NCBI RefSeq assembly: GCF_006345805.1
Contig: NC_043018.1
Coordinates: 21,142,001 to 21,206,000, forward strand
Length of the DNA: 64,000 nt
Direction: 5' to 3'
Origin: Octopus sinensis
Lineage: Eukaryota
The position numbers and the translations under genes were made by a program. The notes below the pieces were generated by a model. That model did not search any database. It had not been told where the DNA came from and saw only the letters and a list, made by a program, of their open reading frames with translations. Shown here one piece after another: positions 18,101 through 24,100 of the stretch (its first letter is position 1; each line of letters opens with the position of its first letter).

Positions 18101-21100
18101 AGAGAAAGACCGTGCTGCTTTAGACAGCTTATTGACCACTATGCTGAAAGAAATGAATTTCCCAGGAAAAGTAATATTTTGCTTTTTTTTATATATCACG
18201 TACATAAATATAATATATAAAATTATACTTATATAATTTTCTATTCTGTATATACACAGCATGAATGAGAAGTAATGAAATGAATTTCAATATCTTAAGG
18301 CAATTTAAGGCAGTAAGCTGGCATGCCAGGCAATATACTTAACGGGAGTTCAAATTCAGTTGAAGTCCACTTTGCCTTTCTTCCTTTCAGGGTCAACAGA
18401 ATGAATACCTGTTGAACACTGGGGTTGCCCCTTCCTCCAAAATTACTGGTTTCGTACTAGAATTTGAAACCAGTATCTTAATGCAATTAAGTGTGATAAA
18501 GAACTTTACAAAAATATGAACCTATTTCTTCTGTATGTTAGATGTTTGTCACATTGAGGTGGGGAACTATTGATTGCATCCACCTAGGGAGAGAGATTGG
18601 ACATGTTTTCTCTGAAGAGTGATCAAGAAATTGTGTAAATTTTTATTTCAGTACTTCTAATTAAATTTTCTCTTTATATTCTCAGAATTGTGCTTGTCTC
18701 ACAAGTGATTTGATCTGAGATCATGTGTTGAAATTAAAACAATCACAGCATTGAAAACACATAATCAGCTTTTCAAAAAAAACAAAAATAAATAAAAGCT
18801 GTTAATTTCACTTAAACTTTTAATCTACTTCTGCTTTTGCTCAAGAGATTGACGTGTGGGATATATAAATTAGTCCTTCAGAAACACACAAACCCGTCAA
18901 CTTAAACATTTATTTGTAATATGGTGCTAAAATGTTTGTTGCTTGAAACTGCAACTCGTCTACCAACAAAAATATTCTGCATTCCAGCTTCAGCGCATGA
19001 TCTCCAATCCAAATACTTGCTATGCAAATGCATCTCTGTACTTTTGCTCAGTCATATCTCAACTCTTTAACATTCAGATTATTCTGTCGAATCTAATGCT
19101 TATTCATTCAAATTGTTTTGAATTCATCATGCATTATTTCACAGCTTTAAAATTTCAATGGTGAGAATGACATCATAGAGCCAGTGTAAGAGGCTGGATC
19201 TGGCTGGGTTTAACATAAAATGGATTGAATATTTGGGGCTGGATATGGTTGGTTTAAATGTTAAAGGGTTAAAAAAAAAAGCTTATGTTGCATATGAAAC
19301 ATACTTTTTATTTCATTTGCACAAAAAAAAAAAATGTTCCTTAAATTTTCTCATTTTTTTCTCGTTTTCTGATTCATGTTTTATGTGACCCCTTTTTTGT
19401 TCCAGACTATTTCATTGTCAGCTTAGTAAGCTCTCCACTTGTCCATGGACATTTCTTTCTAATTTGCAGGAACTGGATCACATTTCTGAAAGATCAAAAT
19501 ACCATGAAGTGAAGCTAGCCTTATTAAGACTCTTCAGTGTCTTGCTGTCTCGCACCAAAGCTGGCACTCGATCAACGTCTGAGGTAACGAATCTCTACCC
19601 CTTCTCTTTAGACAATACTCGTTAGCATATCAGTTTAACTCTACATTTCATTCCATCTGAACACCTTTTTGATCTCCATGTGTCTAACACACGTGGACAT
19701 GCCTACAAAGTCAGAAAACAACACAGCTCCCATGACTTTCGGAAACATTTCTTCACGCTCAGAGTTGCTGATGCATGGAATAAACTGCCTGCGTCAGTTG
19801 TTGACTGCCATGACACTGCATCCTTTAAGGCCCTCATGCTTTCCGAAATCCGTCGAAACTACACCTGATTATATATGCACTTTAGATGAGTTGTAGTGCA
19901 CCTGAGCACTGTACACAATGTTTATTATTATTATTATCTAATCCACCACCATCATCAAGCTTTTAGTGTTGGTACGGCAAGCTGGCAGAATCGTTAGCAC
20001 GCCAGGTGAAATGCTTAGCAGTATTTCATCTGCCGCTACGTTCTGAGTTCAAATTCCGCCAAGGTCGACTTTGCCTTTCATCCTTTCAGGGTCGATTAAA
20101 TAAGTATCAGTTACGCACTGGGGTCGATATAATCGACTTAATCCCTTTGTCTGTCCTTGTTTGTCCTCTCTGTGTTTAGCCCCTTTAGGGCAGTAAAGAA
20201 ATAGGTATGGCTATATGGTTAAGAAGCTCCCTTTACAACTGCAGGCTTTCAGGCTCAATCCCATTGTACTGCACCTTTGGGCGAGTGTCTTCAGCTGTAG
20301 CTCTGGGTCCAGGTCAACCAATGCTTTGTGAGTGAGTTTGGTTGACAGAAATTGTGTGGAAGCCCACCGTGTGTGTGTGTGTGTCTTTGTTCTCCATCAC
20401 CGCTTGACAACCAGTACTGGTTTATGTATGTGCCCATAACTTAGTGATTCAGTAAAAAGTGATCAATAGAATAAGGACCAACCTTTTAAAAAAGTAAGCA
20501 CTGGGATATCTTTTACTTTCAATCTTCCCAGAAAACATGTCTGGCCATGGAGAGAATATTACTTTGCTTGGAAACAGGTGTAAGGGTTGGCAACTGAAGG
20601 ACCATTCATCCTCAACAAATTCTGCCTGACCCATGTGACCATGGAAAAGTGAACATTTGAATGATGATGATGACAGCTGTATTCTGTGAATTTTTTTTTG
20701 ACTAAACCCTTTGCCTCTTTTTCATCGTTTCAGAACTCATTCATAAACCTTAATGCAGCAAGTGCCTTGTTAGCTTGTGGAGCAATAGACTACTGTTTGA
20801 CTGCCCTCCATAACTTGTTACCTTATTGGAAGCAATACAATGGAGATGAGGTAAAAACTATAAACTTTCTAAGCTTGATTTCTATAATATCATTACCAAC
20901 CTTTTTTTTTTTTTTTTTTTTAAAGAAATTTCTAATTATTAGAATTGTAAAATGTTTAACCCCTTACCCGGCAGAAACGAATATATGCGTTTTGACCGAA
21001 ATCGTTTTTTTCCATCTCTGGCGAGTTAACTCGTCAAAAGATAGACTCGCCAAAATCGACAGCAAACGAGTTCCTTCATCTACATGATGACACCTCAAAC

Positions 21101-24100
21101 ACCTTATGTGAAGAGGCAAGTAAGAAAAGTAAGCAAACATTTCTGCCCAAAGCGGTAATTTAAAATCAATATTATTGAATTAAAATTCATAATAAATAAG
21201 GTTTGAAATATACCTCGAAATCACCATTCAAAACATAGTAAAATAAAACAATTAAAAATATGTCTGAAAAAATACATTTATTTTCAAAATAATTGTTGGG
21301 TAAGGGGTTAAGGAATTATTGCGTGTGAAATTAATTAAATTTTTGATAGTATTTATCAACACTCTGTTAATGAAAGAAGAAATATACGATATAGTTAAAG
21401 CTAATTTTAGCGTAATGTCAGTTTTTGTCTGTGTTGATGAACAGTAACATTTGTATTCAATGCATTTAAATTTATTCTTTTAGTTTTGATTTGTTTTGTT
21501 TTTAATATTCATTATATCTGCAGAAGAGAAATACAAATTATATTTAAATTGCTTTCTAGTAATTTAAATGGCCATCTGTATATCATACTTAATGTATACA
21601 CATTGTTGATAGGCCAGTTCCTGCAGGATTTGTCCTGAGATAGCATCTATTATGGAGTTACTGTATTAAAAACACACTAAATATTAATGTGAGATGAAAA
21701 TTCATTGCAGTAGTGGCTAGCAAGAACACCAGAGGCATTTTGGCCTTTTCACTTTCATTCTACGTGTTTGCGTGCCCATTTGAGAACTTTTAGTTGGCAT
21801 AAATCAGTCTATTCTAAATTTATCTATAATCATTTTAGTTTGTTTTTGAAAGAATCTGGAGGTATTATGTAGATATGCTTCTTATATTTCACAGGTCTTT
21901 GAAAGCACAGAGTAACTGGTAGTAATGTTAACTAGTCATGTCAACATGAACACTGCTTCACTTGAAACAGTAACATATTTTCATTGTCACCATTTTAGTG
22001 AAGCAGCAGTCATATTGACATTATGACCAGTTGCTTTGTGCTTCTTGAAGACTTATGGTATATATAAGTCTTTTATCTGAAATGGGGCGAAGGAAATGAT
22101 GGCAAGAGCATCTTGCCATAAAATCCTATCTCTAAATCAATTCACATCCAAACCATTCTAGCATGGGTGGGGTGGAATGTTAAATGACTGAATGAATGTA
22201 GAATACTTCTATGAACAAATTTGCATTCCACTTATGTTTATGTGAGCTGTAAATAATCTTATTAGAACTACTTTATACAAGCTTTAATATAGAGAATAAC
22301 AGAAAACTATATATTAGATCAATACCGAAGCCAGTGCCGCCTCGACTGGCTTCCGTGCCGGTGGCATGTAAAATGCACCAATCCGACCGTGGCTGATGCC
22401 AGCCTTGCCTGGCACCAGTGCAGGTGGCACGTAATAAACACCCACTACACTCACGGAGTGGTTGGCGTTAGGAAGGGCATCCAGCTGTAGAAACACTGCC
22501 AGATAAGACTGGAGCCTGGTGCAGCCTTCTGGCTTCCCAGATCCCCGGTCGAACCGTCCAACCCATGCTAGCATGGAGAACGGACGTTAAACGATGATGA
22601 TGATGATGATATGGAAAATAATAGAGAATGGTGAAACAAACCAACATGCTGTTTCTATTTATATTTTTTAAACCACAAAGTATTTAATGATTTCAGTATA
22701 TATACTCATTCTAGTGGCGTGTGATGCAATCATTTATTGAAAGGAGGAAAACAGTGATCGTGTTTTTTATATTGGCATTTTACAATATTTAATTTGTTTT
22801 TTTCTGTTTTACCTCAGGATGAAGGATCTAATCTCCCAGGCCAACTTTTGAAACCCCACCCAATGTGGCCACCACCTGACATGACACCTTTCTTCCTGAG
22901 ACCATATGTCAAAGGTCATGCTAATGATGTCTTTGAGGATTATCCCCAGTTGTTAACTGAAATGGTTCTCAGACTTCCTTATCAGGTATTTCAAAAATTT
23001 TCTTATTCTAGTTTGCAGAAACTTTTGTATCATTTAAAAAACAATAGTCGTTTTAATAATTTGTCCGTTTGAAGCCACTACATATTTAGATGAGAGGTAA
23101 ATGACCAACTATCGAAAACTTTTGGTATTCCTTCATTAAACAAGCTAAACAGATCAATTTTTCTTTTTTTAAATCACAATTCAGTCACTTCTACACAATC
23201 ACCAAACATCTCCACAACTTAACACTGTCCACGTTAACCCTCTTCGCCTATACAAACCGTCCAGTGGATGGGGGTAGGTGCGGGGCGTTTGTTGGTAAAT
23301 TAATAATTATTCATTTTGAAGCAATTTTTATTTATCTATGTTATTTTATTTTTTAGTTGAAAAAAATTGCTGATTCAAATACCGGAATTCCAACACCTGT
23401 ATTTGAAGATGGTTGGTTCAGTATACTTTCAGAAGTGAGTATTTTTATTTGTGTCAATAAATTTTGGAGCGTAATAGTAGTACATTGGAGAGAGAAAAAA
23501 AAATCATGCTTGTTTTATTTAAAAAATAATTATCTTGGATAATTAGAGAATAATTGATTATAAAAATTGTTTCAGAAATACGTACCATGTCCATCTCTGA
23601 AATGAAAAATATATATTGTTTACATCCGTAAGAATTAAGCAGCCCTGAGAGACAAACTTTTTTTTTTTTTAACAGTTGAACTTGAAGTAGATAAAGCTAT
23701 AGATCCCCTTTTGATTACATTGCCCCCAGTGTTCAACTGCTACTTGTTTTATCGACTCCAAAGGGACGAAAAACAATGCCAACCTAATAGCATGTAAATA
23801 TTATTTTTAAAAATCCATTTGAATAAAAAAATGTCAAATACCTGTGTGATTTGTTGTATCCAAAGGGATTTTTAATCATATATTTACATGTTGTTATTTA
23901 AAGGTTTATCTTCTTCAAGTTCACCACTAAAAATATGTATTTATTGCCTTTATATGTACAGATTATTTTTAGCTAGACTAGACTATGCTCTCTCGAGTAT
24001 TTCATTTCAATTCACTGATAAAGCAACCATAACCAAATCCTGTTTTTATTTTATTTTTCTGAATGCAGAGATTAGACCAGATATGGAAAAATCAATAACT

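Follow-up and report, generated by a model that had tools for sequence, protein, structure and literature searches.

Transposable elements (TEs) bounded by terminal inverted repeats (TIRs) can enclose pieces of host genes. In animals these constructs have been catalogued as Pack-TIRs by Tan et al. (2021, Nat Commun; PMC8277862), who list 370 cases from 100 genomes, about two per 10,000 TIR elements. Of 281 unique cases, 56.9% lie less than 15 kb from the parent sequence, mostly less than 5 kb; nearly all are single-copy, and exonic sequence is 3.2-fold over-represented (PMC8277862). The captured tract, for which a cutoff of >100 bp was set (100-5000 bp), has a median length of 224 bp. Breakpoints are inside the TE rather than at its ends and show small gaps only, 67.6% of cases have microhomology at one breakpoint or at both, and in primates the outgroups usually carry the TE without the insert. 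A break within a resident TE, Tan et al. conclude, becomes filled through a switch of template to DNA close by, with no transposition involved (PMC8277862). The subject here is a small example, in a new host and a new superfamily, of a construct of this kind, already catalogued in animals: a 348-bp piggyBac-type element in an intron of the UBR4 gene of Octopus sinensis, with a 62-bp copy of a UBR4 exon and the start of the following intron inside it. It is found in a stretch of 64,000 nucleotides (contig NC_043018.1, positions 21,142,001 to 21,206,000), hereafter the window, to which all coordinates refer.

Like the Pack-TIRs, the octopus element has host sequence between both ends of one TIR element, a judgement made from matching TIRs and TTAA target-site duplications and not from a consensus TE. 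It is single-copy in the sequence searched, its parent is in cis at 5.6 kb, the insert consists of an exon plus partial intron from an unspliced template, both breakpoints lie inside the TE, and the whole is in an intron. The Pack-TIR definition calls for an unambiguous parent of at least 90% identity that has no flanking TEs of its own within 100 bp, and for an insert that is not a retrocopy; here the parent exceeds that identity and intron sequence is retained. There are also differences. The insert, at 62 bp, is below the 100-bp floor, which is a search threshold and not a biological criterion; its junctions are blunt; and whereas 87% of Pack-TIRs are in hAT or TcMariner elements, the host element here is piggyBac-type and resides in a cephalopod.

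Plant Pack-MULE, Pack-TYPE and Pack-CACTA elements are likewise non-autonomous transposons with intact ends, target-site duplications and a gene fragment inside, but they have typically been mobilized and amplified after capture, often hold several fragments, run to hundreds of bp and belong to other superfamilies. No mobility or amplification of the octopus element was seen in 206 kb of Octopus DNA, made up of the window and 142 kb of O. vulgaris (seven 20-kb loci, assembly GCA_951406725.2). By these comparisons, the present case matches the profile of Tan et al. better than it does Pack-MULE-style capture and mobilization.

MITEs (miniature inverted-repeat TEs) derived from piggyBac, such as the coral CMITEs (PMC2872659), resemble the octopus element in having a TTAA duplication, short inverted ends that begin with C, a length under 1 kb and no coding capacity. 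They are, however, multi-copy, with autonomous partners identified or inferred, whereas the octopus element is a singleton in the 206 kb and has a fourth base, C, that is off-motif. Human MER75 and MER85 and the Xenopus TxpB derivatives are further MITEs of piggyBac origin. A resemblance is also seen to filler DNA at double-strand breaks, as produced by theta-mediated end joining or by fork stalling and template switching/microhomology-mediated break-induced replication (FoSTeS/MMBIR): a short co-oriented tract from a nearby template, with no separate target duplication. Theta-mediated templated insertions are typically shorter, with the template within tens to hundreds of bp. Microhomology is usual at break filler but absent from the octopus junctions.

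The exon copy and its host element

Positions 21081-21142 are identical to positions 26684-26745 at 62 of 62 sites, on the same strand and 5,603 bp apart (blastn E = 2e-27). In a self-comparison this is the window's only dispersed, non-tandem, non-repeat-family duplicate at a minimum of 97% identity, and there is one parent in the window. The first base of the copy is the first base of a UBR4 coding exon (exon D; exons near the element are lettered A to E in Table 1). The parental acceptor CAG is replaced by ATC, and the donor AAA|GTAAGC is kept together with 14 intron nucleotides. Thus the preliminary description was right in that the copy is co-oriented, comprises the exon and 14 nt of intron, has lost the acceptor while keeping the donor, and arose locally, from a parent 5.6 kb away on the same strand. 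The parent is flanked only by a (TA)n repeat, with no TE within 100 bp. This microsatellite (26557-26602, about 80 nt upstream of the parental exon) is a potential fragile or slippage-prone site, as is a T20 homopolymer at 20903-20922, 34 nt upstream of the left TTAA of the element.

The entire window is within Octopus UBR4, on the + strand: tblastn with a 4,878-amino acid UBR4 homologue (P0081) finds residues about 2001-4187 in some 45 exons across it, and the local introns are all phase 0. The best protein match to the UBR4 exons is 72% identical overall and 88% over the most conserved exon; the best library representative is 59% identical. None of ten window open reading frames (ORFs) was present in the protein collection searched. 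Exon D encodes roughly residues 2,905-2,925 of the homologue and aligns to UBR4 fragments of whale, trout, Nematostella and many other animals. To judge from these alignments, the exon is of great age, codes under constraint and has been conserved between cnidarians and whales. Because of this conservation across animal phyla, the direction of copying is from gene to element, as had been proposed. The earlier name 'exon 22' designates a genuine UBR4 exon, but the number is a within-window count only; the exon is about the 20th detected by tblastn.

The surrounding element occupies 20960-21307 (348 bp, or 356 bp counting TTAA on both sides) and has perfect 10-bp TIRs; the insert lies 121 bp and 165 bp from its two ends. 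Are these ends fortuitous? In windows simulated with a first-order Markov model (n=200), TTAA with an inverted repeat of at least 10 bp occurred in 4%, and TTAA with a CCC-starting repeat of at least 7 bp in 1.5%, while from base composition the reverse complement of the left 14-mer is expected within 1 kb about 4e-6 times. With simulation rates this low and an expectation of that size for the 14-mer, the ends are not coincidental. Direct reading of the sequence upholds the length, the TTAA duplications and the TIRs as first described. The similar subterminal motifs that were also reported fared less well: they are identical at 11 of 14 positions, yet the shuffle test on the local alignment is not significant (p = 0.13). 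Without its insert, the element as single-stranded DNA folds far better than shuffled sequences do (z = -4.65), which is MITE-like.

Intact ends bear also on the quality of the assembly. A mis-join that placed 62 bp within the element is hardly credible: the sequences on either side of the insert are parts of a single element, with ends and TTAA duplications in perfect agreement across it; mis-joining would exchange flanking sequence and not insert 62 bp cleanly; and no runs of N or repeat collapse are found nearby.

Junctions and template

In the element the junctions read ..GAGTTCCTTCATC(copy)CTGCCCAAAGCGG.., and in the parent ..TTTCTTTCTTCCAG(copy)ATCCTGGATTTCC... On neither side is the first flanking base shared, and hence both junctions are blunt and the insert can be placed without ambiguity. 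Of the 10 nt upstream of the copy, six agree with those upstream of the parent (TTCCTTCATC vs TTTCTTCCAG; p about 0.03 against random 10-mers of the window), and the three bases adjoining the copy, where the acceptor AG would be, all differ from the parent. No second templated patch of 10 nt or longer was found near the junctions. There is one further peculiarity. The ATC to the left of the insert (21078-21080) and the CTG to its right (21143-21145) together give ATCCTG, the parental hexamer at 26746-26751. The chance of this configuration is about 4e-4, but it was noticed post hoc, and simple one-switch models would put ATC on the opposite side of the insert.

The template was unspliced DNA or DNA-like, since 14 intron nucleotides were kept and no exon C sequence adjoins the copy. 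A spliced-RNA template was rejected: what lies upstream of the copy does not resemble the 3' end of exon C (..ACTTTCAGAA). Hallmarks of a retrocopy are missing at the copy, which shows neither an exon C-exon D junction nor poly(A) nor an L1-type duplication and keeps intron sequence.

Might unspliced RNA have served? Reverse transcription of a piece of UBR4 pre-mRNA, or of a circular by-product of small size, could have supplied the insert at a break in the element. In keeping with this, the left breakpoint is exactly at the exon start, and ATC plus the insert is a circular permutation of parental 26684-26748. By the established chemistry of splicing, however, the normal reaction never frees a 5' end at the first base of an exon, and there is no GT or AG at 26745/26746 or 26748/26749 that would allow a back-splice. 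The retained 14 nt of intron and the missing retrocopy features speak against it as well. For a 62-nt tract and a 48-nt exon, the chance that one breakpoint coincides exactly with an exon boundary is a few percent; the 6/10 similarity upstream blurs the coincidence, which is not taken as evidence of RNA. An RNA template is thus very improbable, and the hint of one in the preliminary description is not borne out.

Origin of the insert

On balance, and with some reserve, the locus is best regarded as a single-copy Pack-TIR formed when a gap in a resident element was filled independently of transposition. An element of piggyBac type, young and non-autonomous, would have inserted at a TTAA in a phase-0 intron of UBR4; later, as a resident, it would have been broken internally or have stalled a replication fork. 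In the course of repair, the strand that was broken or being synthesized would have switched to a template 5.6 kb downstream on the same chromosome, made a co-oriented copy of 62 nt (the 48-nt exon and 14 nt of intron), and then been rejoined to the element. In such a history the element would come first and the filler second, the pathway would be one of repair, and the copy itself would never have moved.

Several points weigh against gap filling. The junctions are blunt, without classical microhomology, and the ATCCTG coincidence is left unexplained by a simple one-switch model. The tract is shorter than anything in the catalogue of Tan et al., the main text of which mentions neither piggyBac nor molluscs (PMC8277862). 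Moreover, the order of element first and insert later is inferred.

A different course would couple the insert to excision. A longer and possibly autonomous piggyBac-type element at this TTAA site would have excised, and its resynthesis from the sister copy would have aborted and switched to nearby DNA; an internally deleted derivative would then have been made in one step, with the 62 nt filling the junction of the deletion. A sharp difference exists between the two arms, the left being CpG-rich with a GC content of 0.45 and the right having 0.24, as might the two ends of a longer element, and the filler is local. Abortive gap repair is classically how MITEs and filler DNA arise (PMC3814204, PMC8277862), and long, recently active piggyBac families are reported for O. 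vulgaris (PMC13282606). Yet the GC/CpG change point of the element is at 21155/21156, to the right of the insert and not at it; the notion that the insert marks exactly the compositional junction of the arms was rejected on this account, the distance being 13 nt. Excision of piggyBac, as Mitra, Fain-Thornton and Craig reportedly found in 2008, is normally sealed seamlessly via the TTAA overhangs, with no synthesis. Excision-coupled filler is therefore less natural here than in elements of the hAT, P or Mutator type. The 206 kb yielded no parent element, and for most animal cases the breakpoints and gap sizes are inconsistent with the excision model (PMC8277862). An excision-linked origin, and with it the one-step internal deletion, is considered unlikely.

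If gap filling in a resident element is the correct explanation, the pick-up of nearby host sequence by this route extends to piggyBac-type elements in a cephalopod, and to a tract of 62 bp. Such micro-captures are probably under-counted, because 62 bp is below the size that published surveys searched. Being a single instance, the locus serves as an illustration and establishes no new principle.

Classification, copy number and age of the element

A TTAA duplication is common to the piggyBac and Kolobok superfamilies, and Kolobok ends start with AG/RR (PMC6004289). The TIRs of piggyBac elements follow the motif C[C/A/T][C/A/T][T/G/A][T/A/G][T/G/A] and are 5-19 bp long, with a mean of 14 (PMC5381638). 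The terminus CCCCTT of the octopus element fits five of the six positions, the deviating base being the fourth (C), and the element is therefore piggyBac-type, in agreement with its first assignment; Kolobok was rejected, as the termini are not AG/RR.

The element is small and non-coding. A six-frame peptide query of it against 5.8 billion proteins returned no relative at E<=10, and a search of the region against Rfam gave no match, a sub-threshold chance hit alone being returned. Neither blastn at word size 7 nor the 14-mer end pattern, allowing up to 2 mismatches, revealed a second copy in the window, and none was found in the O. vulgaris DNA. The left-end 19-mer has four GC-rich bacterial chance matches in JGI metagenome contigs, without TTAA or extension, IMG/VR yielded 0 matches, and a literature search for the terminal sequences turned up nothing relevant. 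Because copies are absent from the window, the O. vulgaris sample and the metagenome and viral collections, 'MITE family' as used in the preliminary description is a reading of anatomy; by that anatomy the element may belong to a multi-copy family.

These searches bear on the prospect of a mobile Pack-type MITE, whereby a member of an active family captured the exon and exon-bearing copies transposed, the present copy being the founder or the product of a local hop. The perfect ends and duplications and the CpG content of a young element suggest that it may still be mobilizable, and multicopy Pack-TIRs do exist in frog, alligator and fly (PMC8277862). These make up 1.4% of cases, however, and are always far from the parent (PMC8277862), whereas the octopus copy is 5.6 kb away in cis. 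No second element, with or without the exon, is present in the 206 kb, and the 62/62 identity together with the proximity points to an origin in situ. Spread by transposition is quite unlikely. In ascribing the capture to the transposon itself, the preliminary description goes too far.

How old are the element and its insert? The element looks young, as its ends and duplications are perfect and the left arm has a CpG observed/expected ratio of 1.75 vs 0.42 for the whole window (0.26 and 0.44 in the MITE families E1 and E2, described below). The 10 CpG of the left arm place it in the top 0.6% of the window's 121-bp stretches. The left arm has no 10-mer in common with the rest of the window. The absence of differences between copy and parent (0/62) bounds divergence at <4.7% (95%) or <1.1% (50%). 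Gene conversion over 62 bp is unlikely to have maintained the identity, given the minimal homology lengths. The capture was first described as very recent; recent it is, but since 0/62 only sets the bound of 4.7%, it need not be 'very recent'.

Possible splicing consequences

By its position, the copy places a proven splice donor and 16 in-frame codons within an intron of UBR4, a conserved gene of very large size that encodes an E3 ligase. The copied donor, identical to that of the constitutive exon, is 278 nt into intron A. Candidate acceptors upstream of it were scored by the pyrimidine fraction of the preceding 20 nt (Table 1). The 66-nt in-frame cassette from the CAG at 21060-21062, proposed in the preliminary description, is correct, and its pyrimidine tract is indeed poor compared with those of real acceptors. 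Since the better acceptors lead to a frameshift or to stop codons, any use would more likely be as a rare poison exon than as a new protein segment.

The copy is probably without function. Action as a decoy or cryptic splice donor would be its only plausible activity; it could seed a new cassette or poison exon. It is decidedly improbable that the exon-bearing element is still mobilizable or is already used by the host, either as an exon-shuffling vehicle that has spread or through splicing of the donor at 21128/21129 in UBR4. Had it spread, the exon and a working donor in other genes would constitute a piggyBac-type exon-shuffling vehicle in cephalopods. Were it spliced, the weak acceptors at 21062 or 21044 would give an in-frame cassette of 22 or 28 residues, and the better ones at 21025 or 20925 a frame-breaking 'poison' exon.

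Table 1. Window coordinates of the element, the exon copy, the neighbouring UBR4 exons and the splice acceptors considered
Feature	Position	Strand	Description	Basis
Left TTAA target-site duplication	20956..20959			sequence
Left TIR CCCCTTACCC	20960..20969		exact reverse complement of 21298-21307	
Left arm	20960..21080	+	121 bp, GC 0.45; 10 CpG; near-palindrome GGCGAGTTAACTCGTC inside	
Copy of UBR4 coding exon	21081..21128	+	entire 48-nt exon, 16 codons, without acceptor	sequence
Copy of downstream intron start	21129..21142	+	first 14 nt (GTAAGCAAACATTT), splice donor intact	sequence
Right arm	21143..21307	+	165 bp, GC 0.24	composition analysis
Right TIR GGGTAAGGGG	21298..21307			sequence
Right TTAA target-site duplication	21308..21311			sequence
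Parental tract	26684..26745	+	UBR4 exon D (26684-26731, phase 0-0) and 14 nt of intron	
UBR4 exon A	20722..20850	+	donor GT 20851-52; element starts 106 nt downstream	
UBR4 exon B	22818..22985	+	closes the phase-0 intron that hosts the element	
UBR4 exon C	23357..23434	+	spliced to parental exon D; 3' end (..ACTTTCAGAA) absent from element	
UBR4 exon E	from 27424	+		local exon map
CAG acceptor	21062 (last intron base)		66-nt cassette, in-frame, open	pyrimidine fraction 0.45
TAG acceptor	21044 (last intron base)		84-nt cassette, in-frame, open	pyrimidine fraction 0.40
GAG acceptor	21025 (last intron base)		103-nt cassette, frameshift	pyrimidine fraction 0.75
AAG acceptor	20925 (last intron base)		203-nt cassette, stop codons inside	pyrimidine fraction 0.90
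Real acceptors, exons B-E				pyrimidine fraction 0.80-0.85

Other repeat elements in the window

Miniature elements with TTAA/CCC ends are common in this genome. Family E1 consists of MITEs of about 229 bp with TTAA duplications and CCCTTTAG ends. Its intact copy is at 3490-3718, and further copies are at 30865-31079, 45528-45761 (- strand), 28561-28769, 19061-19272 and 13961-14066. The six window copies are 69-79% identical to the intact one, and about ten are present in the 142 kb of O. vulgaris, at up to 93% identity. Family E2 has a length of about 217 bp, TTAA duplications and 12-bp CCCTTTCGTTAC ends. The intact copy is at 54769-54985; others are at 33036-33228, 8790-9016 and 9040-9198, with fragments at 45767-45854, 63878-63969 and 55271-55372. 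At least four further E2 copies in the window are 74-92% identical, and about eight are found in the O. vulgaris sample. Both families have TTAA/CCCTTT..AAAGGG ends, with about 18 copies between them in the 142 kb. Both occur about once per 10-15 kb in O. vulgaris, whereas the exon-bearing element, which differs in family from E1 and E2, is found once in 206 kb.

Other TTAA-flanked structures are present. A block at 11662-12707 consists of 362-bp tandem units (99.8% identical) and is also a TTAA-flanked perfect inverted repeat of 175 bp; it has the core TTATCGCCATA(T/C)TAATATGGCATTCTT in common with a TTAA-flanked hairpin at 5668-5831 that has 30-bp ends. A third TTAA-targeting type is represented by a 157-bp foldback element at 45909-46065 with 54-bp perfect inverted ends (CGTGACAGTCCTGTAAGGG...). 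At 41120-42528, in a UBR4 intron, is a 690-bp tandem duplication of 99.6% identity with duplicated 72-amino acid ORFs (41477-41695 and 42167-42385).

A minisatellite with 19/20-bp units at 24600-24748 stems from the 5' motif (GGCGTTAGGAAGGGCATC) of an abundant octopus short interspersed element (SINE), copies of which are nearby at 22456-22606, 24718-24857 and 25149-25300. SINE copies throughout the window yield spurious ORFs of 80-160 amino acids, and ORFs like them carry hypothetical-protein annotations in O. vulgaris. One SINE-derived window ORF has seven matches past the cutoff, up to 92% identical and every one of them named 'Hypothetical predicted protein [Octopus vulgaris]'. An ORF at 25540-25770, in the intron between exons C and D, presumably represents the C-terminal tail of a long interspersed element (LINE) of the RTE type, which it resembles.

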